DNA of 64,000 nt from IMGVR_UViG_3300031576_000002:1-64000, one strand, 5' to 3'; shown: positions 15,057-48,377, counted from the stretch's first letter. Translations and numbers: made by a program. The notes: generated by a model from the sequence alone, not told the origin.

Positions 15057-15704
15057 TTACGCCATCCGTTTGTCTTGCTGCGAGTTGACTTCTGCACCTT
15101 CTGTAAACCGTCGAATTATATTCGCCTCCATCTCAGGACTCCAGTCATGCAATGTCCGATTTCCAACCCCTGCGCCATTCGGCCATTCCAGATGTCCGTG
15201 CGTCAGCTTCACCCGCTCAAAATACTGCGGATCTCTCAACTGCCCGTAGACAGAGCCAATCATTATTGGCCGGAAATCAATCGTCTTCTCTGTCCCGTCG
15301 TCGAACATCATCTGGATCACTCCATGTCGTACAATGCGGTAATCCAGAATTTGATAGAATCTTGGTGCAGCAGCTTTCTTACGCGAACGCTTCTCGTACG
15401 GAGCAATCCTGTTTGGATGCTGTCCTACCGAGAGAAGTTCCCAATTTGCAAGTAGCTCACTCGCATGCTCTCTCGCCCATAACTGCACTTCCTTCTCCGC
15501 CTTGATAGCATCTTCTGTCAGCCTGAACGCCGAGGGAATCTCGTACACTGCGCTGGTTCCGTCTGTAAGCTCTGCGTGAAAGTGCGGTAAATGGTGAGGT
15601 TCATCAAACTCCGCATTCACGTAAACCCGGACATTCTTCCAACGTGATACTTCCGCCATCGCTGCTCGTCTAAGCTGCCGGGTAACTTTCTGGAGCCGTT
15701 TCAA
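15057..15704 (-). CDS. DUF4160 (HicA-like)-DUF2442 fusion protein
   Basis: EPHHLPHFHAE...EVQLWAREHASELLANW, then 'IQMMFDDG..KTIDF...L.DPQYF..VKL..G.LEWPNG'; start TTG 15704 or ATG 15659. Confidence 0.75.
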   Translation of the reverse strand: MKRLQKVTRQLRRAAMAEVSRWKNVRVYVNAEFDEPHHLPHFHAELTDGTSAVYEIPSAFRLTEDAIKAEKEVQLWAREHASELLANWELLSVGQHPNRIAPYEKRSRKKAAAPRFYQILDYRIVRHGVIQMMFDDGTEKTIDFRPIMIGSVYGQLRDPQYFERVKLTHGHLEWPNGAGVGNRTLHDWSPEMEANIIRRFTEGAEVNSQQDKRMA

Positions 15705-19262: not shown

Positions 19263-20423
19263 TCAGCCTCCCTTTTCCGCTAACTCATTAAGTCTGCCTA
19301 CAGGCGTAGGCAGCCCGCCAATAAGGGCATAGACACGTAATGCAGCACTGAACGCGGCCCCAGTGTAGACACCCCTGTGAATTGTTACACCTTTGCGGCC
19401 CATCATTTCAGCCAATGCCGCGATACCGTACTCAACATCCTGGGCTTTCACCTTGGAAAGAACATCTGCGGAGCCCACTGCCAGAGCAGCGCCCAGCTTG
19501 GCCTTCGAGAGATCGAAGCCCTCAGCCAGCATGCCACGCTCCATGTTTTTTCGGATCGCTTCCGACAACTTGGTCGCGGAAGGATCCTTCACGTCCATGG
19601 CGCCAAACATGACCGTACCGCTACCAAGCACAGTACCCAGGTCACGGCGATCGAACGCCATGTCCGCAGGCGTAGCTGCCAAAACCGTGAACGCTTGCAG
19701 CATCGACAGCACGGCCAGATTCGGCTTCTCCCACTTCATCGTCAAAGAAAGGTTCGGCCAAATCTTCGGTATCCGGTTGTTGTCCACGACAATGAGCGGC
19801 GTCAGCTCGCCGCGATCGACCTTATCGAAGAGTGTCGTCAGAACCCTGTGCGCGTTGCGGCAAACGCCGGGCTGCTCCGTCGTCTGTGGAATCGTCACGA
19901 TTGCGCCGATTCTCGGATAAGCCGGATCAGGCCGCTCCAAGGTCTCGGTGTAGCGCTTGACCGTGTCGAAGATGTTCTGCCGGCCTTCCTTTTCAATCAT
20001 CGCGCCAGAGCCACTGCCGCCACCAGAACCGCTCGCGCAGAGTACGACCTCCACGTTTGCGCCGAGGCTGGTATGCAGCAGGTCGAAGATCGCGTCGCGC
20101 GCTTCATGGATCAAGTCGAGGCCAACATCGGGATTCTTTCCTGCGCCTCCGGTGTCTCCCGCAAGCAGCTTGCGCTCTGCGGGAAGAGCCTTGAGCTGTT
20201 CGAGGTCGCCGGGCGCGGTATTGATCGCGCAGACACGTCGCCAGCCAAGTCGCCAAGCGGTCTCCGCTAGACGGCCGCCTGCCTGGCCGATTCCTACGAA
20301 TCCAATTCGCACCGCGGACTGGAACGTATCCTCGTGCGGATCGACAACGGTTTCGATCTCCGGCAGCTCGAAACTCGCCAGCGCGTCAAGTCCCGTCTTT
20401 GGCTCAGTCATCCCGTCCCCCAT
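19263..20423 (-). CDS. Tubulin/FtsZ-superfamily GTPase (PhuZ/TubZ/CetZ-like)
   Basis: GIGQAGG, INT, GAGKN, GSGGGSGSG signature, VDNN, D..D. Confidence 0.9.
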   Translation of the reverse strand: MGDGMTEPKTGLDALASFELPEIETVVDPHEDTFQSAVRIGFVGIGQAGGRLAETAWRLGWRRVCAINTAPGDLEQLKALPAERKLLAGDTGGAGKNPDVGLDLIHEARDAIFDLLHTSLGANVEVVLCASGSGGGSGSGAMIEKEGRQNIFDTVKRYTETLERPDPAYPRIGAIVTIPQTTEQPGVCRNAHRVLTTLFDKVDRGELTPLIVVDNNRIPKIWPNLSLTMKWEKPNLAVLSMLQAFTVLAATPADMAFDRRDLGTVLGSGTVMFGAMDVKDPSATKLSEAIRKNMERGMLAEGFDLSKAKLGAALAVGSADVLSKVKAQDVEYGIAALAEMMGRKGVTIHRGVYTGAAFSAALRVYALIGGLPTPVGRLNELAEKGG

Positions 20424-20424: not shown

Positions 20425-21108
20425 TCAGGCTTCCGCGCCTTCTTCCATTTTGCGGTACGTGTAGTAGTAATCGCGCAGCTCTCTCCCTGAAAGATTTTTA
20501 ACCTTTTGTACTATCTCCGTCTTAGCCCGTTCAGGGTGCTGCTGCACAACCATACGAGTCAGGTGTTCCCGCAAGTTCTCTTCCTCGGAAGGCCCCCAGG
20601 TACGAGGCCATGCCCCGTACCTACGAAGATAGCGTACGAGAGCAGATCCCTTCAACAGGTAGGTAGGATGTTCTACACCTTCAGAGAAGTAATCTCCAGG
20701 CTCTGCCTGGGGGTACTCTTCCCGCTGATGTTCATAGCGTTCTGTCCCCTCTTCCGCATACTGCCAGCCTGGCACATCAGCTTCTCCGCCCTCCCCCGAC
20801 ATAACCGCCAACAACCCGTAAGCTCGAATCTGAGAATCGGTCACGGCATGCAGATCAGTCCCTAGACCATTCGCAATGCACGAGACCATCGCTGTCAGGG
20901 ATCTATCGACATCTCTCTTCTCGGCCGCAAAAACAAGTTCCGGCAGTTCTATTCCTGCCTCCTCGTACTCCTCGTAGGCGCCGCTTGCGTTCGGCCCTAC
21001 GCCGGGCAAAAGGCCAAACGCGCGAATGCTTTCCTCATGAAACGTACAAGTACCGTGCACCAAAGTCTTAGACGCCAAAAGACTTAGGGCACGCTGAATA
21101 GATTGCAA
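20425..21108 (-). CDS. Putative ADP-ribosyltransferase-fold protein
   Basis: LVHGT...SI...GLLP followed by LVFAA, typical of the H-x-T ART clade; downstream Y and E positions not verified. Confidence 0.45.
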   Translation of the reverse strand: MQSIQRALSLLASKTLVHGTCTFHEESIRAFGLLPGVGPNASGAYEEYEEAGIELPELVFAAEKRDVDRSLTAMVSCIANGLGTDLHAVTDSQIRAYGLLAVMSGEGGEADVPGWQYAEEGTERYEHQREEYPQAEPGDYFSEGVEHPTYLLKGSALVRYLRRYGAWPRTWGPSEEENLREHLTRMVVQQHPERAKTEIVQKVKNLSGRELRDYYYTYRKMEEGAEA

Positions 21109-21111
21109 GTC

Positions 21112-24100
21112 TTACTCCTCGCGACCACCCAGCAAGTCCTTCGACCCTATCGAGCCTTCCTCGGTTCCATGCAGCGACTTCTCAAGCTGTGCCTCGGCAT
21201 CTGCAAGAGCCGCCGCCTCTTCCGTAGCATCGGCGTCCGTGAGCACACCTTCAAGTGTCAGCACTTTCCGAATCGTAGCAATTTCCTCGTCGGTTCGCCC
21301 AAGGCTGACCAGCTCGGCGTCAATGTCGTCCCACTGCATCGACAGAATCTCGCCGCCCTCTGGAGCGCTTTTGAGCTGCGCCTTCTTCCCGAATTTCTTC
21401 CACTCAGGATGAGAGGTATCTCCCTCACGCAGGAGTTCCACAAGAGGTTCCACGTCTTCGTAGTGAACGCCGCAGAACTTGCCTTCTTTATCCCAGATCC
21501 TTGAAGAGATGTGATCGGACGCAACTGGAAAGCGGTAGGGATCGTGACCGTTGCCGCTCGACTTCTTGGAAGTCTTACGACTGGCCGTAGGCATTGGCGG
21601 AGCCCCCGGCAAGCCCTTCGGCCCTTCCTCGCCTTCCGCGAAGAGGTCGGGGTGCTTGTCCATGATCTCTTTCTTGTACTCCTTCTCCTCGACGATCTGG
21701 CGGCGTTCTGCGTCCAGATCGAGTCCTGCTCCGGTTGCCATCGTGCGTTCCGAAATGATTCCACGTTCCATGAGGTCCCGCCAGGTAGAGAGCAGCGCAT
21801 TGTCCTGCGTCGGCTCCAAGCGCTTGCGCCACCAAATGCGGGGAACGATGAGCTGGCTTTCCTTCTTCTGAATGCGAACGCGATGACTGAGTTCCGCCGG
21901 TGTTCGCCGGTAGAACTCGTTCATTTTCGCTATTGCGACGAAGATTTTGGGATTGATCCAGCGCCGCTCGAACATACGGCGGAAGGTTTGGAGGCGCTCA
22001 ACCATAGTCTGTAGACCTGCGACAGCACTGGCGTAGCTGGCCTCACCGAGGAGGAAAGATTTTGAAATGCCGAGACCTAAGAATTTAACGCGCTCGATGA
22101 AGTCCCATTCGCGACTGGCTGAGTTGTGGGATGAGATAAAATTCGCCAAATACAGGTGATTGCCGTCCGTTTCAAGATTATAGACATTCCCTTTGTAAGG
22201 TCTGGAAGACACATCCTTGACAGAATACTGTACCCAGTCCCCTACAACTTGATTCCCAGCACTTCTCTTAAAAGTCCCTGTATACTTTTTACCATTCAAG
22301 AGTCCGTAAAGTTTTCTAGCGCTCGCCTGCGTAAGCGTAATTGTGTGACGCTTAGGAGCGTTTACATGATTATTTCTACGATGGTACGCCTCTTCCCGGA
22401 TGCCTAAGCTAGGAGCGAACCCCGTAATCTGTAGCAGTCTTACCAACTGTGAAGCTAGCCAAGGCGAAGTAGTAGAGGCCATAAGAGAAAGACTTTCCCA
22501 CTTCATTACGTATTTGCGCGTCCAGCCATCTCCAAGAAAATAGCCTTTCAAAAGTTCAAGCTGGAGGTCTTCCTCCCAGCAAAAAATACTTCTATGCAGC
22601 CACTTCTCTTGTGAGTATTTATCGGCGTATTTAATCAAAAGCTCTGTCATCTTACGAGCGGGCTCTTTCGGGTAGCAGCCCCGGACGTGAACTCCGTTAC
22701 CATAGGCTTTGTAAACTGCGGGCTTTACTCCAAACTCTTTCCGCATAATGTCCATAATGTCTTTTATGATTGTCGTGTCGCTCTTATCCAGGGCAATAGA
22801 AATCCCAGCATCACGGTTCCTATTGACGGATACCGCACATCCATCTGCAAGATAGTATCCGATCAGACGAGCTACATCGGGCGATACAGGTCTAGTCTTT
22901 TTCCCTTTTATATGTCTCGGCGCGACGAGCAGGTCGCCCGCGCGGATTTCAGACGCGGGCGCCTCAGTCGGTACCGCACACGAAGAATATCGAAATTTTG
23001 AAAAAAATTTACCGCAATAGCCATTATGCTTTCTAGGCTTTGCCTTCTTACAAGGCTCCCCATTTTTATAGCAGGGCGGCCTTTTAATGACGAGCAGCCT
23101 GTGTTCAGCGGTCACGCAAACAGGCTCCGGCAAACCTTGTACGCACAGTGTTACCATAGTACCCTTGTATTTTAAGGGTTTCACATTCAACGCCTTTACC
23201 GGCGTACCAGAGCCTCCTTGTAGAATCGTATCAGGCTCCACAAATTCTATAGGGCACTGTGTTCCGTCCTCCAGCGTGATAAGCGTTCCAGCCGGATGAC
23301 ACAAAAGGCGATCACTTACACCAACAAGCTCCACACTCAATCCGTAATTATAAACGATTGCCGCGAATGGATCCGTCTCGGCAATCGCCAACATGTTAAG
23401 AAACGACTCTTCGTCGGACTTAGACGGTAAAAATCCCGTAGCGGGGTCTCCGAGTTTGAAGATTCTAAGAGGGGCGGCATTACGCTGCGCGACTGCCAGA
23501 TAGGCATTGATTAGGAAATCGCTGACCATCTGAATCTGGTATAGCCTTGACAACATGCTCGTGCCCAGATGGGTATACGGTGAAATCTTTCGAGCAATAT
23601 ATGTGGCATTCAAAGGATCCAGAGGTATTGGAATTCCTGCAATCGCGTAATGAATGATCTTGGGCGGCAATTTTGCCCTCGCCCTCACAAGCCTCGGATC
23701 TTGACTGGTCGCCAATGCTCGCAATTCTGGAGTCGGCTTCAAGTCAATAACAGGCTCGAAACCGGGTACTGGTACAGGAGTTACTGCAAGGTAGTCAGGA
23801 TTGTAAACCAGCAGGTTAGACCAATAATTCTTACGAGTGTCATAGATAAGATGAGGCACAACTTTTCCAGTAATCAGATACTCTCTTGCCAATTCCGGAA
23901 GCCAGCTTAAAAGATTGAGATCCGACATCATACTCTCATAAATCTCTTTGACTCGCGGATCATCTTCGAGCCCGAGAAGATCAAATTCCGAGAACGGAAG
24001 CTCGCTCCAGACGTCCAAGGCCGCCCCCACCGCAGGATCGCTGCGGTACATGTGCCGCCAAATTGCATTGGCCTGCACTTCACTACGGGGGTAGTAGAAC

Positions 24101-24423
24101 TTGTCTGGCGTCGAGTAGCGTGGATCGTAATAGATCGGCGTACTGATCTGCGCCGTAGACCTTCCCCCCGCGACCGTGCCCGACGTAAAGCCTGCATTCG
24201 TCGCAGACGCAGAACTCCCAAATCCTCCGAACGGGTCGGACTGCTGCGCGGTTCGGTGGAACCCGCGCCGGGTGTAGACCGCACCTGTTGCTCTAGGCTC
24301 GGAGGAGAATCCGCCTCGTGCCGACGTCTCATTGAAGAGACGCGACATGAAGTCACCTGACGCTTGATCGCGGTATTTTTTACCGTCGTTCGCCATTGTA
24401 TTTAACCGCCCCACATCCCACAC
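21112..24423 (-). CDS. Phage portal protein interrupted by an intein
   Basis: 'DPAVGAALDVWSELPFS', 'GTSM', 'RNAAPLRIFKLGD', 'LGLGISKSFLLGEASYASA' large-phage portal pattern; lies in the head/packaging region with TerL. Confidence 0.8.
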   Translation of the reverse strand: MWDVGRLNTMANDGKKYRDQASGDFMSRLFNETSARGGFSSEPRATGAVYTRRGFHRTAQQSDPFGGFGSSASATNAGFTSGTVAGGRSTAQISTPIYYDPRYSTPDKFYYPRSEVQANAIWRHMYRSDPAVGAALDVWSELPFSEFDLLGLEDDPRVKEIYESMMSDLNLLSWLPELAREYLITGKVVPHLIYDTRKNYWSNLLVYNPDYLAVTPVPVPGFEPVIDLKPTPELRALATSQDPRLVRARAKLPPKIIHYAIAGIPIPLDPLNATYIARKISPYTHLGTSMLSRLYQIQMVSDFLINAYLAVAQRNAAPLRIFKLGDPATGFLPSKSDEESFLNMLAIAETDPFAAIVYNYGLSVELVGVSDRLLCHPAGTLITLEDGTQCPIEFVEPDTILQGGSGTPVKALNVKPLKYKGTMVTLCVQGLPEPVCVTAEHRLLVIKRPPCYKNGEPCKKAKPRKHNGYCGKFFSKFRYSSCAVPTEAPASEIRAGDLLVAPRHIKGKKTRPVSPDVARLIGYYLADGCAVSVNRNRDAGISIALDKSDTTIIKDIMDIMRKEFGVKPAVYKAYGNGVHVRGCYPKEPARKMTELLIKYADKYSQEKWLHRSIFCWEEDLQLELLKGYFLGDGWTRKYVMKWESLSLMASTTSPWLASQLVRLLQITGFAPSLGIREEAYHRRNNHVNAPKRHTITLTQASARKLYGLLNGKKYTGTFKRSAGNQVVGDWVQYSVKDVSSRPYKGNVYNLETDGNHLYLANFISSHNSASREWDFIERVKFLGLGISKSFLLGEASYASAVAGLQTMVERLQTFRRMFERRWINPKIFVAIAKMNEFYRRTPAELSHRVRIQKKESQLIVPRIWWRKRLEPTQDNALLSTWRDLMERGIISERTMATGAGLDLDAERRQIVEEKEYKKEIMDKHPDLFAEGEEGPKGLPGAPPMPTASRKTSKKSSGNGHDPYRFPVASDHISSRIWDKEGKFCGVHYEDVEPLVELLREGDTSHPEWKKFGKKAQLKSAPEGGEILSMQWDDIDAELVSLGRTDEEIATIRKVLTLEGVLTDADATEEAAALADAEAQLEKSLHGTEEGSIGSKDLLGGREE
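22123..23301 (-). mobile_element. Intein with LAGLIDADG homing endonuclease (393 aa)
   Basis: Starts CHPAGTLI, ends VYNLET..NHLYLANFISSHN/S; LIGYYLADG and LLKGYFLGDG; lower GC. Confidence 0.92.
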
Positions 24424-24821
24424 TACCTAAAAATAGCCCAATCCTTAGACTCCTCAGCATCCGGAAAGTAAGCGATCCAGGCAGGTACAGGTATTCTCAG
24501 CAGGTACCCCACTTGTAGGCGATGATTGCCTTCAATCCCGTGAGGTCCGATAACAACAGGGCGCCGGAAGCCTACTTTTCTCACACTTTTCAGAAGACCT
24601 TCTAGTCTTTTCAGAGGCTCCGCTTGAAAAAAATCTCTCACCATATCTCCAGCCACGAACGGGTCTACCTGATCGCGCCGCCACACGATTATATCTTCTT
24701 CACTTACATCCAAAGTCGCTAATGCTTCATCTCTCACATTCGCTGGGAGTTCGGAAGTCTTCAAGTCAGCAGAGCTTCTCAGTGTACTTGCCACTTTTAG
24801 CAGACTATTCATTAGATTCAC
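24423..24821 (-). CDS. ParB/Srx-like domain protein
   Basis: LKSVRKVGFRRPVVI...IEGNHRL...IPVP. Confidence 0.75.
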   Translation of the reverse strand: MNLMNSLLKVASTLRSSADLKTSELPANVRDEALATLDVSEEDIIVWRRDQVDPFVAGDMVRDFFQAEPLKRLEGLLKSVRKVGFRRPVVIGPHGIEGNHRLQVGYLLRIPVPAWIAYFPDAEESKDWAIFR

Positions 24822-25129
24822 CGGAGAGCTTCAATCGCTGTCTTCAGTTTACCGAGCGAAGTCTCAATCTCATTCAAATTGGGCTGCATCAGTCGAATAG
24901 CCTGCACGATTTCACTTTCCATCCGGTCCAGCACTTCAGCCGGCGGGGCTCCGGGTGGCTTCTCCCTCCGCATTCGTTGCGTCTTTTCGAGTGCTTCCTT
25001 GAGCGCTCCTAGCGCTCTGGACACAGCAGTCGTCAAGCCGCTTGCTGTGGGCGAGGAGGAATACTGCAATCCACTGGATAGCAAATCGGGCGGAAGGAGT
25101 GATCCAGGTCTCAAGCTGTTGTCCGTCAC
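24818..25129 (-). CDS. Hypothetical helical protein (true start uncertain; overlaps next ORF)
   Basis: ORF track; ATGA-type coupling at 24818-24821. Confidence 0.4.
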   Translation of the reverse strand: MTDNSLRPGSLLPPDLLSSGLQYSSSPTASGLTTAVSRALGALKEALEKTQRMRREKPPGAPPAEVLDRMESEIVQAIRLMQPNLNEIETSLGKLKTAIEALR

Positions 25130-25556
25130 GGTTCATCCTCAGCATGCACCTATCGGACTTCTTCTCAAAGTACAGCGTAAGGTCAGCGTCAAGAAATCGT
25201 GTAACGGCCCCTTGCCCGCCAAAAGCTTCTGGAAGCGGTACCGGCTTTGGCCTCGGCACGAACACGGGTCGGAGCATCTTGTTCCATACCAGCGCGATCT
25301 TGAAGAGTCTATCACGGCAGCCGGGATACGTGCGATCTTTCGTGTTGTAGAGCGCACTCGGCCCGAACTGCGGTATGGCTCCGTCAAGGATCGAGAGCAA
25401 GATCGCGGGACGGTACCGCCGCATCCTGAGAAGCCGCTGGATCTTTTTCGGGAGGGTGCGTACCGGCGTATCCGATACAGGTAGCCCGTCCCTGCGCTGA
25501 ATGTGAATCCGGGAACGGGAGTAGTTCAGCGCGTGATCGTGATAGATCAGTTGCAC
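24936..25556 (-). CDS. Hypothetical protein
   Basis: ORF track. Confidence 0.45.
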   Translation of the reverse strand: MQLIYHDHALNYSRSRIHIQRRDGLPVSDTPVRTLPKKIQRLLRMRRYRPAILLSILDGAIPQFGPSALYNTKDRTYPGCRDRLFKIALVWNKMLRPVFVPRPKPVPLPEAFGGQGAVTRFLDADLTLYFEKKSDRCMLRMNRDGQQLETWITPSARFAIQWIAVFLLAHSKRLDDCCVQSARSAQGSTRKDATNAEGEATRSPAG

Positions 25557-25558
25557 TT

Positions 25559-26284
25559 TTACGTGTCGCCGTACTTGTCAGGTTCAGTCTCTAGCTTCTT
25601 GCAAGCTTCTTGGAGGAGCTGGAGAAACTTTTCAGTCAGCGCAGATCCATCTGGGTGTAGACTGATTACATGCAAGATATGCTTTTGCTCAGGCCCTTCT
25701 TCCATGACTTTCGGATTTCTGAGAATCGTTTTCCATACATCAACGTCATCCTGCGGCTCCCCTCTCAGCATCTTTGTAAGAATGGCAAAAGCTAGCGAAG
25801 GGCCTACTACCTGGACGCCGTGTGAAGTCGCTGGAATAGTTTCGCCTTCGTTCAGTGCGATCTCTAACGCCTCGGGTTTGTGCGTCACAAACTGGATCTT
25901 GACGCCACTTTCCCCATGCTTGAGTGTAATCCGATTCGGACGGAACGTACCCCCTGCTTCACGAATCTCGACTTCCCGAAATCTGTAACGGCTTGCGGCA
26001 TCTATTACTTTCGGCAAGGAGTGCGCGAAGATCATAAAATCGAGGTTTTCGGTCGCACGCACGTAGCCGTGAATTCCTAGCGCGGTCGCTCCGATCAGTA
26101 CGTAGGACACGCCCAGGTCGTCCAACATCCTGACTGCGTCACGCAGGGTAGCCCCAAAGTCGCCTGTACCCGCAGCACCTCGGTAGAGCAGCGCATCCCG
26201 CGCAAAACCTGTGCTCCACGCAAGCGTCCGATCCAAAGAGGGACGCCCATCAAGAAGGGCTGCGACTTCTTGCAGGGCCTGCAT
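25559..26284 (-). CDS. Nucleotidyltransferase-fold protein (same family as 5592), first catalytic Asp replaced by Asn
   Basis: YVLIGATAL.IHGY.RATENLD. Confidence 0.75.
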   Translation of the reverse strand: MQALQEVAALLDGRPSLDRTLAWSTGFARDALLYRGAAGTGDFGATLRDAVRMLDDLGVSYVLIGATALGIHGYVRATENLDFMIFAHSLPKVIDAASRYRFREVEIREAGGTFRPNRITLKHGESGVKIQFVTHKPEALEIALNEGETIPATSHGVQVVGPSLAFAILTKMLRGEPQDDVDVWKTILRNPKVMEEGPEQKHILHVISLHPDGSALTEKFLQLLQEACKKLETEPDKYGDT

Positions 26285-26290
26285 AGGAGG

Positions 26291-27094
26291 TCAGAGCTCG
26301 AAGCCTTGCGCCAGGATCTCACGGGTGGCTGCAAGGATCCGGTGGAAGCCTTTGATCTGCCGCCCAACGTCTTTTCGCTCGGAATCAGACGCGGCGGATA
26401 GCGACCAGCGGAATCCGGTCAGTCCGTTCTCGACTAGGCTGGCGATCTTCTGCGCCTCTTCCGCAACTTTCGCAGCGGCAACGATCAGGTCCTCGTCCTT
26501 CTCCGGCGCCTCGTCTCCAAGCACAAGCGAGATTTCCGACAGCGCCTCGACTGCTTCCGTATCTTCTGCCTGAGCCTGCGCCGTGCGCCGGACCCAGTCC
26601 AGATTGATCGGCGAGTTGAGATTGTGGAACGCCCTTCCCACGGCTTCATCTGCCTGAGTGTGCGTCAGGCCGTACTCGTGCTGGAGGCTGAGAGCGGTCT
26701 CGCCGATAGGACCGAGCGTGGTCATACGCTCGCCTTCCTCCGCCCGGGTATCGACCAGGGTGAAAATCTTGTAGGTCGAGTCGTAGTAGAGAAGCTGGCC
26801 GTACTGCTCGGGACTCGGCTCTCCCTGCGCCTTTTTGTGCAGAGAAGCTCCGACATCTACGGACTTCTTTTCAGGCTTCATGAACTCTTTGACGCACTCC
26901 CACCCGCACAACTCGGCGCCCATGGTCGGATTGTAGACCCAGCCTGGTTGCTTACCCGGACCAGGTGCCTTGTAACCGCATTGCTCGCAAGTCGTACCTG
27001 GACTAACGCTCTGTTCCCGCCAACCGCCAGGCTGGTGCTGAGCTTCCTTCGTGCTTTCAGTGGCTGACGGCAACATGGCTGGCCTCCTCGTCAA
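26291..27094 (-). CDS. Hypothetical protein (head region) with CEQC...CGWEC
   Basis: ORF track. Confidence 0.6.
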   Translation of the reverse strand: MTRRPAMLPSATESTKEAQHQPGGWREQSVSPGTTCEQCGYKAPGPGKQPGWVYNPTMGAELCGWECVKEFMKPEKKSVDVGASLHKKAQGEPSPEQYGQLLYYDSTYKIFTLVDTRAEEGERMTTLGPIGETALSLQHEYGLTHTQADEAVGRAFHNLNSPINLDWVRRTAQAQAEDTEAVEALSEISLVLGDEAPEKDEDLIVAAAKVAEEAQKIASLVENGLTGFRWSLSAASDSERKDVGRQIKGFHRILAATREILAQGFEL

Positions 27095-27269
27095 TCAATC
27101 GCAGCGCAGCTTTCACTTTCCCAAGATCCATCTCGAACGTCGTGTCCCCGATCTTGAACCATACAGGAGCAAAGTGCTCGGGAATGTTCGAGGGCGGACG
27201 AATGATTTCAACTTCGACCTGCCTCGCTTCTTTCGACTCTGGCTCGAAGTATTTTGCACGAACTCTCAT
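27057..27269 (-). CDS. Small hypothetical protein
   Basis: TAATG coupling with upstream ORF. Confidence 0.55.
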   Translation of the reverse strand: MRVRAKYFEPESKEARQVEVEIIRPPSNIPEHFAPVWFKIGDTTFEMDLGKVKAALRLIDEEASHVAVSH

Positions 27270-28792
27270 TAGACCTCCACCGCTGGCGTCTCGAACAGCT
27301 TGATGAGTTCCGCCATCTTCTTCTGGACGGCGTTCACGGTGGGATCAAGCCCTTCAAGGCGCCCCACGGCTTCGGCTAGATCCGACATGGGATCCCTGAA
27401 GAGTCGCTTGAGCTTGCCCACAACGTTGCCGATCTCCTCGATCAAGCGGCTGATGGGATTACTAGCCTGTGCCAGTCGGCGCATTGCAGGTCGCTGCATC
27501 TCCAACGACGGCGCGGGAGCTTCCTCGGGCACTCCCTGCTCCTGCTCACGTCGCTGGGTCTGCTTGACTTCCTTCGCGAGTCCGGGCGACCAGGGAAAGA
27601 TCGCCAGCAGCCGGTACAGGATGCGGCGCACGGGGCTGACAATCTTCTCCCGAACACGGTCCACCGCTGCCTCAATCTTGGCGTACTCACGGCTTTGCTC
27701 GCCGTAGATGTCCTTGAGTTCGTCGAGCACGGCCGCCAGCGTCTCCAGCCGGATCACGTCTTCGTCGGAGACATCGACCCGTTTCCCTTTCTTCATTGCA
27801 ATGATCCACTGTTCGTACTTGAAGTTCAGCTTCTCCGCAAGCTGAGAAGTACGGAAAATCTTGGTACTGTGCGCCGCCAGATGCGTTCCACCTGCCTCGG
27901 AAAAGTTGCTCGCGGATTCGGCCAGAGGAAGGAGATCGCTCAGCGCAGCATCCAACTTGGCGCCCAGCTCTTGCAGCTCCCGCTGGATCTCCTCGTGCTT
28001 CCGCCAGGTCTGCGACTTGTGCATCGCTTCCTGCGCCTTCTTCACGAGTTCCTTGCTCTCGGCCGCGAGCCCTTCCATGGAAGCCTTGACCTTGAGCGCA
28101 TTGTCGGTAAGCTTGGCGAGCTTCTTGTTGATCTGCTCCAGCTCAGTGAACTCCCGCTGAATGTCGATCTCGGGCGTCTTCTTCTTGAGACTGAGGTACT
28201 TATCCTCTTCCTCCTCTTCCACCGGCTGCGCCTGACACAAAATCGCGGCTACCCGTTCGATACGGGCCAGGGCTCGCGTCAGCAGCGTGAACTTGGGATC
28301 CAGGGACGCTGTCTTGATCCTCCCCTGCGTCCCGATCTCCCACTCGACCCAGACTGTAGAATCGGGACCTGGTGCGATCACTTCTCCGACGACACGCTTG
28401 CCTGCGGCCTCGGATCTCACGAGATCGCCTACCTCGAAATCGCGCGCGGTAGAGAGGCTGGCAACGTGCTCCCGCATGCCTTCCATGGCGGCTTTGACAG
28501 CGAAGGGGCGGTAGATCGTAGAAAGATCCTCGTGAATATCTTCGAGCGATCTTCCCAGCATCCACAACGCCACAGCGCGACTCTGGGCGTCTTCCTCTTT
28601 CTTCTTGGGCTGCGCAAGTCTTACTTCTGCGGCCTTGACCATAAGCCGCTCGCCCGTCGAGATAGAGGTCACGTATGCGACATCACCCGTGCGTCCTTCG
28701 TAGGTACCGATGTCGTCGCGCAACTCGACAGTCGCGCCAATGGGAATGTTACTCATCGAGAAGATCCTCCGCGCCGATATGCGTACCGACAT
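27269..28792 (-). CDS. Hypothetical protein with SH3-like and coiled-coil segments (probable virion protein)
   Basis: ORF track; strongly biased codon usage. Confidence 0.6.
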   Translation of the reverse strand: MSVRISARRIFSMSNIPIGATVELRDDIGTYEGRTGDVAYVTSISTGERLMVKAAEVRLAQPKKKEEDAQSRAVALWMLGRSLEDIHEDLSTIYRPFAVKAAMEGMREHVASLSTARDFEVGDLVRSEAAGKRVVGEVIAPGPDSTVWVEWEIGTQGRIKTASLDPKFTLLTRALARIERVAAILCQAQPVEEEEEDKYLSLKKKTPEIDIQREFTELEQINKKLAKLTDNALKVKASMEGLAAESKELVKKAQEAMHKSQTWRKHEEIQRELQELGAKLDAALSDLLPLAESASNFSEAGGTHLAAHSTKIFRTSQLAEKLNFKYEQWIIAMKKGKRVDVSDEDVIRLETLAAVLDELKDIYGEQSREYAKIEAAVDRVREKIVSPVRRILYRLLAIFPWSPGLAKEVKQTQRREQEQGVPEEAPAPSLEMQRPAMRRLAQASNPISRLIEEIGNVVGKLKRLFRDPMSDLAEAVGRLEGLDPTVNAVQKKMAELIKLFETPAVEV

Positions 28793-29531
28793 GTTCCCAG
28801 GCCCACAAATCCTCGGAAGGAATCTGGTGGGTCTCTTGCGTTCTCAGGTCGAGACTACAAACGCTGTCTTCCGTTGCTGCGATCACCTTGACCAGCGTGC
28901 GACCGTCCATACTGCGCAGCATGTCCCCTGCCGCAACAGACGCAGACATCGGGCGGGGATCGAACTCTTCTCCGAGGTCTTGGTAGTTCTGGCCCTCTTC
29001 CCACTGCGTTCGGAGTGGCTGCTCATCAAGCAGCAAGCTCGTCACTTCCGCACTTTTGCAGTGGGGGCAAGACAGATCCACGCTCTCGGTCGCTTGCATG
29101 CCAAAAAGAGTACCACACGCCGAGCAGCGAAAGCGAGAAGCGGCTGCCTCTTCCACCAGGTAGATCTTGTCCTGACTCTCTGCCACCTTCCGGTAGAGGC
29201 CCTTGGGAAGATCGCTACCCGTTGCACGCTGGTAGCGGATTCTTGCTTCGGGGTAGGACCAGCCATCTTCGACAAGGGCTTGCAAGATCACGGGATCGCC
29301 CGCAAGCATTTCACGGCCTCGGTGCTTGTTCATTTGTTCGCCTCTCCCTCGCGGATTCCAGGGACTCACAGGTGTCACGCCAAGGGTGGTGTCGCTGCGG
29401 TAGTCTACACCCTCTTCCCGGTAACGGTCGGCAGACCAACTGTAGTCCCGCGTCGTAGCGCCGGGATCCAGCCGGTCCCAGTCTCGCACACCCGTCGGCT
29501 GCTCCTTCTTCTTGATCCGTCGTCGGGGCAT
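28749..29531 (-). CDS. Hypothetical Zn-ribbon protein
   Basis: CSACG...CPHCKS. Confidence 0.6.
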   Translation of the reverse strand: MPRRRIKKKEQPTGVRDWDRLDPGATTRDYSWSADRYREEGVDYRSDTTLGVTPVSPWNPRGRGEQMNKHRGREMLAGDPVILQALVEDGWSYPEARIRYQRATGSDLPKGLYRKVAESQDKIYLVEEAAASRFRCSACGTLFGMQATESVDLSCPHCKSAEVTSLLLDEQPLRTQWEEGQNYQDLGEEFDPRPMSASVAAGDMLRSMDGRTLVKVIAATEDSVCSLDLRTQETHQIPSEDLWAWEHVGTHIGAEDLLDE

Positions 29532-30463
29532 CAGTCCTCGTCCTCTTCTTCGATGGTATCGCGCAGATCATCGACATTTTCATCCGTGATTTCTACGTCT
29601 TTGAACTCAGAGTACAAACGCTTGAGAAGCGTCACGTACTGCCAGCGTTCCAGCAGCTTGGACACGATATTGGCCGGAGCCAGGTTAGCACTTTCACCAG
29701 GTCCTACCGGACAATCTTCGCCCGGACACTTGTCCAAGTAGGTCGAAAAGACTTCGGCACGTTCCCTGTCGAACGTATCGTAGCTCGCAAGCACGGTCTC
29801 TACGTCATCATCCAGTTCCTGTATCTTACCGTCGATCCGTCGCATGACCGCAGCGCGCACGTCAAGAGGTACTTTGCGCAATGCTGCACGCAAAAAGTCG
29901 AGGTCGCGCAAATCGCGCTCGGTCTCGCCCAGTTCCAGATCGAGCTTTCGCGCCCAGCTCACGGCACGCGCGTAGACGTCCTCCTCAAGCTGCTCAGGAT
30001 CTTCAATGAGCGGGGCTGGGTCGTAGTCGAACCAAACTTCTTTCATCACGTCGTAGACGTTATCGAGAACGCCAATCCGCTTCGGCCATTCTTCTCGGGT
30101 CGCAATGAAAAAGTTCACAGGATGCTCGGCCACTTGGTAGCGGCCATTCAAGTCAGGCAGGATTTTTTTGATCTCGTCTCGCCTTCCTTCGTCTACGTCC
30201 AGGACAACGCCGATGTCGAGATCCGCCGCCGGTGCCCAGTTCTTTGACGTGATCGAGCCGGAAAGGAACACGCCTTCAAGAGCGTCTTCACTGAGCCCCG
30301 ACTCATCTAGTAGGTCGGACAGTCCATCACCGATTGCCTGGCGGGTCTCCTCACGGAGTCGAGGCGGATCCTCGGAAAGATCCCAGACAGTCTCGTCGAG
30401 CTGATCCAGTGGATAATCCAGCGGACCTGCCAGCAGAGCAATGGCGTTTTGAAGAAAGCTCAT
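29531..30463 (-). CDS. Nucleotidyltransferase (Pol-beta fold, GS...DxD)
   Basis: FLSGSIT..NW...ADLDI...HPVNFF; followed by helical domain. Confidence 0.8.
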   Translation of the reverse strand: MSFLQNAIALLAGPLDYPLDQLDETVWDLSEDPPRLREETRQAIGDGLSDLLDESGLSEDALEGVFLSGSITSKNWAPAADLDIGVVLDVDEGRRDEIKKILPDLNGRYQVAEHPVNFFIATREEWPKRIGVLDNVYDVMKEVWFDYDPAPLIEDPEQLEEDVYARAVSWARKLDLELGETERDLRDLDFLRAALRKVPLDVRAAVMRRIDGKIQELDDDVETVLASYDTFDRERAEVFSTYLDKCPGEDCPVGPGESANLAPANIVSKLLERWQYVTLLKRLYSEFKDVEITDENVDDLRDTIEEEDED

Positions 30464-31005
30464 GCACGCTCTCGTAGGCTGATCTCGATTCGCACGGCTC
30501 TCGATTCAGGCGTGACTCTTACTTCGACCCTGGAGGTATCAAGCGCTGCATCAAGCACTAACCGGGCTCTCCACCGTCTTGCCTCTCGATCATCGTCCCG
30601 CATCTGAAAGGTTTCATCTGGCTTCGGTATTCTACGTTTCCGCTTTCGTAGCCCCAGATCCAGTTCAGTCTGCTCGGTCGTACTTCGCGGACGTTCTGCA
30701 CGGTACAGGATTTCTTCTGCCAGTGGAGAAGCAGCTTTCAAAAAAGTCTGCCGTATGTACGGAAGCTGTCTCTCTGTCCACGCTGCGGATTCTACAGGTT
30801 TGCCTGAAGGGATGATGACTACGATACGGGCTCGGTCTCGTGGATGAAGTGTACCTTTCGGGTTCAGAAACTCTTTTGCCGCGTGTGCTACGGCAGCGCC
30901 TACTAACTGAAGATTTCTGAATTCTACTTTCGACAGTCCTTTATCATCCAGCGGAAGTTCCTGCTGACCCTTCAAGATACAGACCACGCGCCGAAGATGG
31001 ATCAT
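30460..31005 (-). CDS. Hypothetical protein
   Basis: ORF track; ATGA coupling. Confidence 0.5.
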   Translation of the reverse strand: MIHLRRVVCILKGQQELPLDDKGLSKVEFRNLQLVGAAVAHAAKEFLNPKGTLHPRDRARIVVIIPSGKPVESAAWTERQLPYIRQTFLKAASPLAEEILYRAERPRSTTEQTELDLGLRKRKRRIPKPDETFQMRDDDREARRWRARLVLDAALDTSRVEVRVTPESRAVRIEISLRERA

Positions 31006-32807
31006 CGTTCGCGCCGAAAGACGCGGTGAAACTCGCCCGGCGGCTGTTGGTGGAGCTGCACTTGATCGGCTTCATCCACGCCGTAGGGTGGCAGGCGACC
31101 CTGGTTCCAGCGGCGAATCTTGGGGCGTGCTTTGAGGCTCGGCATGATCGGGCCTAGACCACGGGCACGGTCCATGCGCTCCATCTCTTCCAGGTCGCCT
31201 ACCGTTAGAAAGCGACGCCGCTTGTGCGGAACGATCAGCGTTTGGTCCCGGTCTCTTTTCGCATACCCCCCACCCATGCCGGGGTAGTGATAGAGTTCGG
31301 GATCGACGTATTCGTCCGGCTCCAGAGATGTCCAGCGCGGTTGGTACTCCGCCGCCTCGTGAACAGTAACGCGATCCCCGACACCAATACGGCTTGTCCG
31401 GCAGAATCCGCCCGCAGTCTCCAGCACTCCCCCCACACTCGCACAATGGTAGAGGTCATGATCGCCTGGCTGGACGTTGTGGACGATGCGAGCTACCTGG
31501 TAGCCACTACCGGCGTGACGCAGGAACACCATGTCAATCGGGAACGGGACCGTGGACATGTGAAAGGTAACGGACGCGGGAACGTGGTAGGGAAAGAGCA
31601 TGGCTTGGTCACGCTCCAAGCTAGAGTGCTTTGAAAGTCCAATACGCTTTTCGCTATCGGAATCGGCAACGTGTGCCCGGAGCTGGACTTTCCCTAGCCT
31701 TAAAATTACTTCTCGCATTGCGGTTCCCCTTTTCTCCTTCTTACCCTCTAGCCCATCTTCACCGAACTTGCGAAGGCGCACCGGCAAAGCGCGGGAGAAG
31801 TGGGAGTAGCCCTGGGCGCCGAAGTTGGAGTTGCCATTGAAGAGGTAGACGTAAGCCGCCTCCGAGCCGCGCGATTCGGAGGTCCAAATCCATACGGGCT
31901 CTTTGTACAAGCCCGTCTCGTAAATCCTCTTCGCCTCTTCTGCCGTAGGAAGTCTCCAATCTGTGAATCCTCCCTCTCGATAGTTTCTGGCGTAGGTTGT
32001 GGCATCCTTCCAGTTGATGTCTTTTCCGTTGTGACCTTCGGCAACTTGAAGATTACCCAGCGGCTTGAGCCGCTTCTCTAGCTCTTCTGGATGACTGAAA
32101 AGCCACGCCTTTTCAAATTCTTCCGCCTTTACCTTTCCTAGCCCGATCTCATCCAAGATTGGAGCTATTTCTTTCGACACTCTCAGGTTTATTCTTTTAC
32201 CATCTACATCTTTCAACTGCCCACTTTCAGGATGAGCTAAGACGTAAGGCTCGCCACCCTTGAAAATCATATACAACGGTCCCTGCTCACTGTACTCCTT
32301 TGCTCTCTCTGGGTATCTAACACACCATCCTTGTGCGTCGTAGTCCTCGCATATACGCATGATTGCGGCTGGAGTCGTGGTCTTAACTACGGCGTAGGCT
32401 CCATCATCGTATATCTTCTGCTGTCCTTCCTTCTCCTCAATCTGCTTCTTATGTTCTTTGGACTCCTGACCTTTTGACTCTCGAATAACTTGGGCTAGAT
32501 CAGAAAAGGAACGGTACTGATTGATGTCTTTTGGACTTGTGAATCTCGGACTACTCTTTAGCTTGTCAAAGGTTATGAGAATGTCGTGAATCTTCTCAGA
32601 GTCCTCTGGAATTATAATGTCTTGCTTTTTGAGAAGTCGTAGGATCCACCCCAGATACTTCTTCTCGGTAGTAGGATCGGCTTCGGCAGCATCTCGTATC
32701 TTGGCTTCCTCGAACTGAGGAAACAGTTGGAGAAGCTTGGAAAGCCTTTCCTCCAAGCCTCCTCCCAGCAGCCAAACCGCAGAATGGAGCGTACCTGCCC
32801 TATTCAC
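31002..32807 (-). CDS. Multidomain protein: DPT..KY..W/KDINQY/WC phage domain + DUF1566 C-type lectin (putative DGR target 2) + DUF192
   Basis: INWKDATTYA...GGFTDWRLPT...WTSES...RALPVR; then 'VADS..EKRIGLS...MLFPY....FHM..VPFPIDMVFL...VLETAGG' (DUF192). Confidence 0.8.
   Translation of the reverse strand: MNRAGTLHSAVWLLGGGLEERLSKLLQLFPQFEEAKIRDAAEADPTTEKKYLGWILRLLKKQDIIIPEDSEKIHDILITFDKLKSSPRFTSPKDINQYRSFSDLAQVIRESKGQESKEHKKQIEEKEGQQKIYDDGAYAVVKTTTPAAIMRICEDYDAQGWCVRYPERAKEYSEQGPLYMIFKGGEPYVLAHPESGQLKDVDGKRINLRVSKEIAPILDEIGLGKVKAEEFEKAWLFSHPEELEKRLKPLGNLQVAEGHNGKDINWKDATTYARNYREGGFTDWRLPTAEEAKRIYETGLYKEPVWIWTSESRGSEAAYVYLFNGNSNFGAQGYSHFSRALPVRLRKFGEDGLEGKKEKRGTAMREVILRLGKVQLRAHVADSDSEKRIGLSKHSSLERDQAMLFPYHVPASVTFHMSTVPFPIDMVFLRHAGSGYQVARIVHNVQPGDHDLYHCASVGGVLETAGGFCRTSRIGVGDRVTVHEAAEYQPRWTSLEPDEYVDPELYHYPGMGGGYAKRDRDQTLIVPHKRRRFLTVGDLEEMERMDRARGLGPIMPSLKARPKIRRWNQGRLPPYGVDEADQVQLHQQPPGEFHRVFRRER
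31776..31886 (-). repeat. Putative DGR variable region VR2
   Basis: Same length as VR1 (37 codons), no indels, identical flanking blocks. Confidence 0.75.
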
Positions 32808-33133
32808 AGGATCACCGCGTTCTTGCCGTCAAAGTTTTCCCACGCGCAACCTATCGTGCTACACGACCACTTGATCGTATACCCCTCAATCCAGACTCGG
32901 AGAGTCTTCAGACAGTTGGGACAAAGAGGCTCCGGCCACTGGCCTTTTCTGTGCAACTCGTGCTGCGTATTGATAAGGACTTCATTCAAGAGTTGTAGGA
33001 TCGTAGTCACCAGGACAATGTTACCCGGATCCTTCCGAGCAAGGTCGAACAGGTTCGATAGCAGCGCAAGCGTATGGTCAAAGTTCAGCGCTCGCGGCTG
33101 CTGAATTCTCTCTTCCACGCCTACGACATTCAT
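32804..33133 (-). CDS. Hypothetical Zn-ribbon protein
   Basis: CPNC...CSTIGC. Confidence 0.55.
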   Translation of the reverse strand: MNVVGVEERIQQPRALNFDHTLALLSNLFDLARKDPGNIVLVTTILQLLNEVLINTQHELHRKGQWPEPLCPNCLKTLRVWIEGYTIKWSCSTIGCAWENFDGKNAVIL

Positions 33134-33354
33134 TCGAGTCCTCGTGGAATCTCGCCCATCGCAAGGTAGTAAGCCTGCTCGATCTTGCCCTGAGCCGCTG
33201 GATTGGGATTTGGGGAACGCTGAAGTTTGCGAATGAGTTCCGTGTAGCGCGCTCGAAGCTCGTCTTTCGAGGCGCCCGGAGGAAGTCCTAGCAGCTTGTG
33301 AGCATCTGCCAGCTCCATCGCTAGCAGAGCAATGATTGCTTGGAGCCTATGCAC
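33130..33354 (-). CDS. Truncated J-domain (DnaJ-like) protein lacking HPD
   Basis: AHKLLGLPPGASKDELRARYTELIRKL...IEQAY; HPD replaced by QRSPN. Confidence 0.6.
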   Translation of the reverse strand: MHRLQAIIALLAMELADAHKLLGLPPGASKDELRARYTELIRKLQRSPNPNPAAQGKIEQAYYLAMGEIPRGLE

Positions 33355-33364: not shown

Positions 33365-34045
33365 TCAAACTTCTACAATCAGGCTACTAACGTGGTGAGA
33401 CGGATAGCTATCCCCGGCAGGACCGGCAAGTCTGGCCCACGCCGCCATCGTGTAGCACGCATGCACGCTGTACACGCCCTGCGCGACACCATTCGCCGTC
33501 AAATACTTCTCGCTGGCTGGCGCTGGACGGTTCCAGCTTCCAATAACCAGTCGCGCTTTTTCACAGTTCATTCCTGACTTTTTAACTCTTACTGCAAACT
33601 TCACAAAGTCATCTGCGAGCAAATTACGAAAACCTTGCCACGCTACTTCTTGGCTCGACTTGGAATAGACTACGACACCTCTAGGTAGTGGATACACATA
33701 CTTTCGCGTATCATGTGGATAACGTGGATCACGCGGTAGGTCACGATACAAGTAGAAATACTCTCCGTCTGGAATTGGAACTACTTCTACCCTATCCCGA
33801 TAGCCTAGAATCTCCCGAGGCAGGGTTCCAACCGCGAGCGTAAAATCTACACAATCGGCACAACTCGTGTATGGAGAAGGGTGTCGCATCCAGCAGGGCT
33901 CTGCCGACACACCTACATAGGCCACCCCCCCCCGAGATAGCGGCCTAGCTGTTGGAGGTGCCTCTGCGAACACTTCCACGGAGGGTAGCGCAAGAACAGT
34001 CACGCCTGCCAGAACGCTCTTCCCGAAAGTACGGCGATCTATCAT
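33365..34045 (-). CDS. Hypothetical protein with twin-arginine (Tat)-like signal peptide
   Basis: DRRTFGK + hydrophobic stretch + VFA/E cleavage-like site. Confidence 0.55.
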   Translation of the reverse strand: MIDRRTFGKSVLAGVTVLALPSVEVFAEAPPTARPLSRGGVAYVGVSAEPCWMRHPSPYTSCADCVDFTLAVGTLPREILGYRDRVEVVPIPDGEYFYLYRDLPRDPRYPHDTRKYVYPLPRGVVVYSKSSQEVAWQGFRNLLADDFVKFAVRVKKSGMNCEKARLVIGSWNRPAPASEKYLTANGVAQGVYSVHACYTMAAWARLAGPAGDSYPSHHVSSLIVEV

Positions 34046-34662
34046 TCAGCCCTCCAACCCGTCGCATCTTCGACTGGCGCGAGCGAGTAGCGATTGACAC
34101 GCACGCCCTCGATCATGTGCTGAATCCCGACCAGGTCGCGGTCCACTTCAACGACCTTTCCTCGGCAGCGCAATCTCTCATTGACCACGGTCTGCCCGAT
34201 CCGAAACTCTTGCCGGGCAAGCAGACTCTTGACCTCCTGCGAGACTTCTTCCTGATACTTGGTCCCAGGCTTTGTCTTGGGCTTGCGATTCTGCTTCTCC
34301 GCCCACACTGCTAGGTGCTCCCGTACTTCAGGCTCAACGCCATCGGTCAGGATGTCAAAGGCTTCCCGATCAATCCCACCTTCTCGCTCGTCCAAGAGTT
34401 CGAGAAGCTGGCGGCGCCTCATGTAGTCGCGCAGCGCTCGCCCCTTCACGGAGCCTTCTGCCAGCAACGGTTCTGGATAGCGCACTTTAACTCCTTGGGC
34501 CGCAAGACCCAGCGCAAAAGTCTGCTTCTCTTCTTCGCCCAGCTTGGATGCGAGCACTTCGTAGAGCCCGGACTCCAACTCTTTCCGATCGTTCGTAGCC
34601 GCAAGCGCATGCTCCAGCGCTTCGTCAATAGTAAGCGAAAGAACTTTGTCGAGGGCATCCAT
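34042..34662 (-). CDS. Hypothetical protein
   Basis: ORF track. Confidence 0.55.
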   Translation of the reverse strand: MDALDKVLSLTIDEALEHALAATNDRKELESGLYEVLASKLGEEEKQTFALGLAAQGVKVRYPEPLLAEGSVKGRALRDYMRRRQLLELLDEREGGIDREAFDILTDGVEPEVREHLAVWAEKQNRKPKTKPGTKYQEEVSQEVKSLLARQEFRIGQTVVNERLRCRGKVVEVDRDLVGIQHMIEGVRVNRYSLAPVEDATGWRAE

Positions 34663-48093: not shown

Positions 48094-48095
48094 AG

Positions 48096-48329: not shown

Positions 48330-48340
48330 AAGGTTCCAAG

Positions 48341-48362: not shown

Positions 48363-48377
48363 TTTGCCTCTGTACGC

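Follow-up and report, generated by a model that had tools for sequence, protein, structure and literature searches.

We analyzed a group of short N-terminal leader peptides encoded in IMGVR_UViG_3300031576_000002:1-64000, a 64,000-nucleotide stretch (hereafter, the window) that lies at the very start of a single contig of 205,227 bp (JGI Ga0247727_10000083). The contig derives from an uncultivated tailed phage with a completeness of 85% (CheckV). Genes were called with a home-made Markov and ribosome-binding-site caller, which yielded approximately 238 genes over the 205 kb, about 237 of them on the minus strand; the ribosome-binding sites are of the Shine-Dalgarno (SD) type. Within the window, four proteins begin with a 12-residue leader of the form M-x-x-[LI]-Q-x-[AVI]-[LAI]-[SA]-L-L-[AD] (x, any residue), and a fifth copy lies outside the window; the leader as a whole reads M-x-x-[LI]-Q-x-h-h-[SA]-L-L-[ADT] (h, hydrophobic). 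The four window leaders had been noticed in an original prediction as a possible capsid-targeting signal. All four were recovered on the minus strand, each at the first start codon past an in-frame upstream stop, and each with either an SD-type ribosome-binding site or an overlap or abutment with the stop codon of the upstream gene (Table 1).

We scored the leaders with a leave-one-out position-specific scoring matrix (PSSM). Out of 304,631 six-frame positions, 0-15 outscored each leader, and out of 12,131 start-codon positions, 0-4 did so; leader 1, with a PSSM score of 26.8, ranked 0 among the six-frame positions. A blind all-against-all comparison of residues 2-12 of the 238 called proteins returned the leader group as the top and most cohesive cluster and added the fifth copy, MKEIQAVLSLLT. 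The largest mutual-similarity clique comprised five members in the N-terminal register, compared with two to three at nine control offsets, and the enrichment over background N-termini on which the original prediction depended was confirmed. As a control genome we used Virus Rctr197k (197 kb), the nearest phage on record, which comes from a methane-oxidising/anammox enrichment culture and shares 31% identity in the large terminase (TerL) and 43% in the major capsid protein (MCP). In Rctr197k, no start-codon match scored 15 or more and N-terminal cliques did not exceed background; scores of 10 or more were reached by 0 of 180 N-termini there and by 10 of 238 in the present genome (Fisher P = 0.006).

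Table 1. Positions of the leaders, their carriers, second-tier proteins and neighboring genes
Feature	Position	Strand	Remarks
Leader 1, MQSIQRALSLLA	21073-21108	-	TTG start; AGGAG 6 nt upstream; gene 20425-21108
Leader 2, MQALQEVAALLD	26249-26284	-	ATG start, 6 nt past the upstream stop
Leader 3, MSFLQNAIALLA	30428-30463	-	ATG start overlapping the upstream stop (ATGA)
Leader 4, MHRLQAIIALLA	33319-33354	-	GTG start; AGGAGG 5 nt upstream
Leader 5, MKEIQAVLSLLT	139721 of the genome (outside the window)		Heads a 62-aa open reading frame (ORF)
Carrier 1, ADP-ribosyltransferase (ART)-like, 227 aa	20425-21108	-	Immediately downstream of the portal gene
Carrier 2, minimal nucleotidyltransferase (NTase), 241 aa	25559-26284	-	DUF6036-like, below threshold
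Carrier 3, NTase of PF01909 type, 310 aa	29531-30463	-	Isoelectric point (pI) 4.2
Carrier 4, J-domain-like fold without HPD motif, 74 aa	33130-33354	-	Pfam DnaJ E = 0.0013, below cut-off
Second tier, MNSLLKVASTLR	24423-24812	-	PSSM 8.4; 129-aa protein, no Pfam match
Second tier, MIHLRRVVCILK	30460-31005	-	PSSM 10.0; 181 aa
Second tier, MDALDKVLSLTI	34042-34662	-	PSSM 11.4; 206 aa, just downstream of TerL
Second tier, MKRLQKVTRQLR	15057-15704	-	PSSM 10.8 if the TTG at 15704 is used; DUF4160-DUF2442 fusion
Large terminase TerL	34665-36680	-	One boundary of the leader-rich block
Portal gene with intein-like insert	21112-24423	-	Other block boundary; 37% identical to the Rctr197k portal region
Tubulin/FtsZ-family gene, TubZ type	19263-20423	-	PF00091 E = 6e-8; TubZ-like_C E = 5e-4
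226-aa protein starting MIDRRTFGKSVLAGVTVLALPSVEVFA	33365-34045	-	Tat-signal-like start; no family match

The conserved positions of the leader are [LI]4, Q5, h7, h8, [SA]9, L10 and L11, among which Q5 is invariant; only positions 2, 3 and 6 vary freely. Between the copies, synonymous codons vary and the 15-45 nt upstream are unconserved, indicating that selection acts at the level of the peptide. Each of the five leaders contains 6-7 hydrophobic residues, its net charge lies between -2 and +1, and polar domain sequence comes after it, so they do not have the properties of a signal peptide; a Sec, Tat or lipoprotein signal was ruled out because the leader is too short and not basic. A reading as a beta-clamp- or PIP-box-like motif was also set aside, since the spacing between the Q and the hydrophobic pair presumably does not fit. 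That the leader is genuinely a modular tag, whatever its function, we consider very probable.

A candidate sixth copy at position 139391 of the genome (…LSLLTALALTASC) was dropped as a probable lipoprotein signal peptide. The 291-aa protein that starts there (138516-139391, minus strand) begins MSTYPKGRSLQRFLSLLTALALTASC and adjoins the gene of the fifth leader; its leader PSSM score is 21.8 at offset 6, and it gives a weak match to a glycosyl-hydrolase catalytic core (E = 0.0014).

We further characterized the five carriers. They show no mutual similarity past residue 13, which agrees with the proposal of a modular tag on unrelated proteins. In carrier 1, an HGT motif lies at residues 18-20, and in a set of 32 homologues H18 and E136 never vary and Y45 hardly ever does. 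In its AlphaFold2 model (pLDDT 93.6), residues 4-11 of the leader form a helix of their own, which is modeled with less confidence (pLDDT averages 68 across residues 1-10) and is set off from strand beta-1 by a break of three residues. The top matches in the PDB are nearly all ART folds (Tpt1/KptA, DarT1, MbcT, PARP and ART toxins), although these are weak (E >= 0.1, TM 0.25-0.33), and the Atlas look-alikes are likewise ART folds, at a TM of about 0.43. The label "ART-like" in the original prediction thus agrees with the fold matches and with the H...Y...E pattern, but carrier 1 has no Pfam ART match, and its assignment as a divergent ART-like domain is plausible but weak.

The remaining carriers belong to other folds. 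Carrier 2 has a paralogue at 143696-144403 of the genome with a degenerate leader, MERLKNLANRLA, in the same register. Carrier 3 represents a large and widespread phage family (Atlas TM 0.75-0.77) whose Atlas look-alikes are fused to PAP2, CTP_transf (cytidylyltransferase), Zeta_toxin, M23 and LPD16 domains, and its homologue in contig L034 has no leader and starts at the domain. Word-based protein searches with the two NTases found no sequence other than the query. The Atlas structure of carrier 4 resembles DnaJ-domain proteins (TM 0.65-0.75), and the DnaJ match begins at residue 17. The expectation that the catalytic domain begins right after the leader therefore holds for carrier 1 (from residues 10-13) and for carrier 3, as judged from its L034 homologue, and only roughly for carrier 4. 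The fifth carrier, a 62-aa protein, had no match in Pfam or PHROGs. The pI values of four carriers are 5.05, 5.77, 4.19 and 4.27, and the J-like carrier alone is basic (9.2).

To place the ART-like cargo in a wider context, we conducted an exhaustive HMMER search with carrier 1, which returned 247 homologues whose alignments begin at residues 10-13, just past the leader; no homologue was found in GenBank phages. Architectures were taken from the 149 of the 247 homologues that were listed. In 8 of these 149, the domain is embedded in a protein of more than 1,000 aa; for example, it occupies residues 1487-1721 in one of 4,678 aa and residues 1102-1323 in another of 5,251 aa. Four giant homologues were scanned, and PBECR5, GNAT or 2H phosphoesterase (LigT) domains were present in three of them. 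A further 103 homologues among the matches listed are solo proteins, in which a conserved TLYHGT start stands behind 4-38 lineage-specific residues (median 16). The motif [LIVM]-x-E was found in 54 of these 103 pre-sequences versus 16 of 103, a 3.4-fold enrichment (P = 3e-8), and one homologue (P0130) starts MKTFLQYITE, close to the capsid-targeting sequence (CTS) of phage T4, MKTYQEFIAE (PMC8442874). These lineage-specific tags on solo cargo homologues, T4-type tags included, back the comparison with the T4 CTS that had been drawn for the leader. The leader of carrier 1 is closer to unrelated proteins of its own genome than to the pre-sequences of its own homologues, and neither the embedded ART-like copies nor the L034 NTase homologue carries it. 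The embedding of the ART-like domain in giant multi-domain proteins is the layout of polyvalent proteins, for which packaging and injection together with the DNA have been argued by Iyer et al. (2017, PMC5512222) and whose commonest domains include ARTs and Pol-beta NTases.

Tags shared by unrelated neighbors were also identified in other phages. In a 9.7-kb contig (L014; ENA ERZ27315768 k141_393010), MNWYKK or MNWFK stands at the start of 8 of the 15 gene products, including an ART-like homologue, a second ART-like protein, an Acb1-like phosphodiesterase and a DUF5661 protein. The exact MNWYKK tag was found in at least 119 IMG/VR stretches (e.g., L041, L050, L056, L093 and L098), where, in the form MNWYKK[AS]Q, it heads AAA_33/Zeta-like kinases, ART-PolyVal, a GNAT fusion, Acb1-like proteins and multi-HTH proteins. 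The complete 548-kb phage IMGVR_UViG_3300033145_003233 contained 11 tagged starts in four clusters, compared with 0 for a control pattern. The 601-aa protein encoded at 31002-32807 of the present window has, for its N-terminal part, a homologue in the megaphage that starts MSWYKKAQ. The string "MNWYKK" was absent from the searchable literature.

A different tag occurs in a 352-kb T4-like phage (ENA ERZ27249449 k141_510518), in which 9 of 22 neighboring genes (L140:7978-17930) start with MI[KR]LKxLLxE. This phage is T4-like by Gp23 and gp13 Pfam matches, and the tag, about 10 residues long and ending in [LIV]-x-E, has the layout of the T4 CTS. Its cargo comprises an ART-like homologue, ART-PolyVal, an Acb1-like protein, a GNAT and a lysozyme. 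A fourth tag, MxxxREY[VI]RLxLxE, is common to two neighbors in contig L139. Codon variation between copies holds in all three tag lineages.

In addition to the five strong leaders, a weaker in-register tier was detected in the present genome, many of its members having the form M-[KEQ]-R-L-[QRK]-x-[VAI]. With the four defining proteins excluded, 9 of 234 N-termini scored 8 or more, compared with 0.47% of internal windows (P = 2e-6). The looser matches listed in the original prediction divided accordingly: MNSLLKVASTLR, MIHLRRVVCILK and MKRLQKVTRQLR stand in register, with scores of 8.4-10.8 that correspond to the top 0.2-0.4% of internal windows, whereas TLHSAVWLLG, which scores 8.8 at offset 4, and RLVKAAAVLR, which scores 8.6 at offset 8, do not rise above background when shifts from the start are permitted. 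The label "ParB-like" given to one looser match found no Pfam support, and Pfam and PHROGs searches assigned no family to the second-tier proteins of unknown type. The graded second tier may be part of the same system as the leader. A 122-aa protein at 104312-104680 of the genome (minus strand) has a second-tier-like start, MQRLSRIIRAIG, followed by an acidic tandem repeat (EESMEES...).

One protein among the looser matches, the 601-aa protein mentioned above, had been suggested to be diversified by a diversity-generating retroelement (DGR). This suggestion did not hold up: its N-terminus is at background level, no match to a reverse transcriptase (PF00078) was found in the genome, and no adenine-specific mismatches were observed. 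The only repeat of at least 60 nt is a 120-nt direct repeat (11472-11591 versus 31767-31886) with 77% identity. Out of its 28 mismatches, 8 are at A and all four bases are affected, so the repeat is not a pair of template and variable repeats. It joins residues 308-347 of the 601-aa protein, in its lectin/FGE-like region, to a 157-aa ORF at 11367-11840, and could represent the ends of two paralogous domains or, alternatively, a pair of variable regions for which no template was found.

We next consider the setting of the leaders in the genome. Four of the five strong leaders fall in the block between the portal gene and TerL, which accounts for 7.9% of the genome (P = 2e-4). This interval contains 16 small genes, four to seven of which are tagged, whereas the corresponding interval of Rctr197k is occupied by a single intact 2,175-aa ORF (46139-52666), annotated as misc_feature only. 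The Rctr197k ORF, a candidate polyvalent protein, includes a GNAT domain (residues 1765-1820). The synteny of this slot, with a single GNAT-containing ORF in one phage and small tagged genes in the other, is consistent with packaging of the tagged proteins. The remaining head module lies 80 kb away, at 115-120 kb, and comprises a head maturation protease (118755-119624 of the genome; phrog_18299, E = 8e-36), a scaffold candidate (117115-118749; a 544-aa coiled-coil protein), a 240-aa protein and the MCP (115116-116297). That protease, scaffold candidate and MCP are encoded here counts in favor of a capsid-targeting role. The MCP matches phrog_2522, and the phage is not T4-like. A TerL scan of IMG/VR found no relative, and MCP-profile scans of IMG/VR and JGI metagenomes found the genome itself and relatives at 25-36% identity, with nothing closer.

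Several further features of the region were observed. The TubZ-like gene lies directly downstream of the ART-like carrier and is followed by two glycosyltransferase-like genes. In the predicted translation, the portal insert appears to have a Cys at its N-terminal junction and ...SSHN/S at its C-terminal junction, together with two LAGLIDADG-like blocks (putatively YYLADGCA and GYFLGDGW). The gene for the protein starting MIDRRTFGKSVLAGVTVLALPSVEVFA has the J-like carrier on one side and, on the other, the gene downstream of TerL. The first 50 nt of the contig are repeated at 205001-205050, 177 nt before the contig end, and the match does not extend to 100 nt.

Because the ART-like cargo occurs in polyvalent proteins, and because tags common to unrelated neighbors are found elsewhere, we read the leader as a capsid-targeting address peptide, the functional equivalent of the T4 CTS, an interpretation to which we give somewhat better than even chances. 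Under this interpretation, the leader helix would attach to a component of the core, scaffold or shell while the prohead is being assembled, with its conserved positions forming one face of a short helix that would be largely buried in the partner. The docked cargo would then be packaged and delivered into the host with the DNA, and tagged solo effectors would be an alternative to fusing the same domains in one injected polyvalent protein. Nothing in the sequence indicates that the leader is cleaved.

Several observations weigh against this interpretation. Packaging itself is something that we infer, for the leader as for the link between tag and capsid throughout. The five leaders have no conserved Glu and no fixed cleavage motif; within the first 30 residues of the carriers, [LIVMA]-x-E occurs at scattered positions (4, 12, 18 and 22) or is absent. 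No match to a gp21-type protease (Peptidase_S77, PF03420) was found in the 205-kb genome at E values up to 10, and the cargo, with a pI of 4.2-5.8 in four of the five carriers, is mostly acidic, in contrast to the highly basic internal proteins of T4 (PMC8442874). The nearest relative, Rctr197k, lacks the motif, and there are no close relatives in which conservation of the leader could be followed, the best MCP identities being 36-43%. Judged by the protease test, the MNWYKK lineage is not T4-like, so the T4 mechanism is extended to it, as to the present phage, only by analogy. A complex prediction of the scaffold candidate, the MCP and the 62-aa carrier (pLDDT 37-48) gave no answer and counts neither way.

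These observations leave room for other explanations, the main one being that the leader docks on another partner in the infected cell, such as a hub protein, a compartment or filament system (for example, TubZ-like), a chaperone or regulator, or the other carriers, all of them assembling into one complex. The missing T4 hallmarks (the cleavage motif, the gp21-type protease and basic cargo) would be accounted for in this way, a tubulin/TubZ-like gene lies directly downstream of carrier 1, and one carrier is itself a J-like co-chaperone domain. A specific contact between a helix and a groove would also suit the invariance of Q5 and the small size of residues 9 and 12, although these features do not name the partner. 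No candidate hub was identified, however, and homologous cargo bears T4-type CTS-like tags in a T4-like phage and also occurs in polyvalent proteins. Moreover, the tagged sets elsewhere consist mostly of effector and anti-defense domains (Acb1-like, ART-PolyVal and Zeta-like kinases), and it is easy to see why a phage would deliver such proteins together with its DNA. We therefore consider docking on another intracellular partner unlikely. Still less likely, in our judgment, is that the leaders are integral first helices of their own domains and resemble one another by convergence of generic amphipathic helices. Most solo ART-like homologues do have some helix ahead of beta-1, the paralogue of carrier 2 keeps its degenerate version in register, and the Atlas structural alignments of carriers 3 and 4 begin within residues 1-7; the motif is hydrophobic and helix-forming, and the supposed sixth copy is more probably a lipoprotein signal peptide. 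Generic helices would nevertheless not be expected to give the PSSM ranks reported above, a five-member clique confined to the N-terminal register or an invariant Q5. The absence of the motif from Rctr197k, the sharing of tags within other phage genomes, the greater resemblance of the carrier 1 leader to unrelated proteins of its own genome and the leaderless state of the embedded ART-like copies and the L034 NTase homologue also speak against convergence.

The leader might instead set the amount or timing of the proteins, as a degron, a stabilizing signal or a site for a processing enzyme that would co-ordinate their turnover. In favor of this, the leader is a short N-terminal element kept on proteins of diverse function, and nothing in the sequence contradicts such a role. 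To our knowledge, no known bacterial N-degron or protease-adaptor motif matches the leader, and the link to polyvalent domains and the T4-type CTS-like tags in homologues would be left unexplained; we rate this explanation slightly below that of convergent helices. The explanation with the least chance of being correct is that the conserved element acts at the nucleotide level, as a translation enhancer, a regulatory RNA site, part of a promoter or a recombination site. The element always coincides with the start codon, and the MNWYKK codons are A/U-rich in AT-rich phages. However, synonymous positions vary freely in the three lineages, the upstream DNA is unconserved, the start codons differ (ATG, GTG and TTG), and a 36-nt motif with many synonymous differences is too diverged for homologous recombination. 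A nucleotide-level role is thus largely refuted by the codon comparison.

Returning to capsid targeting, the tags found elsewhere raise a broader proposal, which we advance tentatively and at somewhat less than even odds: that lineage-specific N-terminal tags are a general, so far undescribed route by which tailed phages beyond the T4 group load solo effectors and anti-defense enzymes. MxxLQxhh[SA]LLA, MNWYKK[AS]Q, MI[KR]LKxLLxE and MxxxREYxRLxLxE may be examples of this route, and its cargo may include ART-like enzymes, NTases, Acb1-like phosphodiesterases directed against cyclic-oligonucleotide-based antiphage signaling systems (anti-CBASS), Zeta-like kinases and GNATs. Proteins injected with the DNA are known for a handful of model phages only, and they decide the first minutes of an infection and its outcome against host defenses. 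If the proposal is correct, injected effectors and the injected proteome would become predictable from the genome through N-terminal peptides common to unrelated proteins. Anti-defense enzymes such as Acb1-like phosphodiesterases may then arrive ready-made, and new short tags would be at hand for loading foreign proteins into non-T4-like capsids.

The principle of a CTS is already known from T4 and P1. What is new here is a distinct 12-residue leader in a non-T4-like jumbo phage without a T4-type processing signature, whose cargo belongs to the domain families of polyvalent proteins. The finding that the same families elsewhere bear other lineage-specific tags, including MNWYKK, a widespread tag that seems not to have been described, is also new. 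Outside of phages, the cargo-loading peptides of encapsulins and the encapsulation peptides of microcompartments offer a parallel, in that a short amphipathic helix with a linker directs diverse enzymes into a protein shell. The encapsulin shell has the HK97 fold, and encapsulin peptides are usually C-terminal. These are cellular compartments, however, and involve no injection.

Among phages, DarB of P1 (PMC9024508) is comparable in that its N-terminal 30 residues suffice to send an anti-restriction enzyme or a reporter into a non-T4-like capsid. It differs in that the signal is described for one protein, needs other Dar proteins and has no sequence resemblance to the leader. The jumbo phages phiKZ and SPN3US (PMC5694885) likewise load many internal proteins, and the paralogues gp53 and gp54 have an identical 15-residue N-terminus that is thought to be CTS-like (PMC5694885). 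In contrast to the leader, the propeptides of these phages are mostly longer than 100 residues, are cut at A/S-x-E and are common to paralogues rather than to unrelated folds.

The CTS of T4 itself is carried by IPI, IPII, IPIII and Alt (Mullaney and Black 1996; reviewed in PMC9026906, PMC3012670 and PMC5694885). Its targeting information lies at residues 4 and 7 (PMC9026906), it functions on foreign proteins (PMC9026906, PMC3012670), and CTS-like sequences have already been noted in T4 relatives (PMC9026906). Like the leader, it is a short N-terminal peptide (10-20 residues) on otherwise diverse, non-essential proteins. The two resemble each other in layout only, with a hydrophobic or aromatic residue at position 4, Q at 5, hydrophobic residues at 7-8 and a small residue at 9. 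An ART-type enzyme is among the cargo in both cases (cf. Alt), the genes are clustered in a variable region, and homologues of the ART-like cargo in T4-like phages bear T4-type tags. The leader differs in its 12-residue length, in its LL[ADT] ending and in lacking the terminal [LI]-x-E cleavage motif. The phage differs in having no detectable gp21/S77 protease, in its mostly acidic rather than basic cargo, in a TerL whose closest match is that of Rctr197k at 31% and in an MCP that matches phrog_2522.

Polyvalent proteins (PMC5512222) share with the tagged sets both their domains (ART, Pol-beta NTases, GNAT, 2H phosphoesterase and Zeta-like kinases) and their predicted purpose, the delivery of effectors with the DNA. 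As searched, the text of that paper describes no such tags and uses the word "Standalone" once. The difference is one of construction: here, separate small proteins carry a common peptide tag, whereas in polyvalent proteins the domains are fused in one polypeptide. If the capsid-targeting interpretation is correct, the T4 CTS and polyvalent proteins would represent alternative solutions to one problem.

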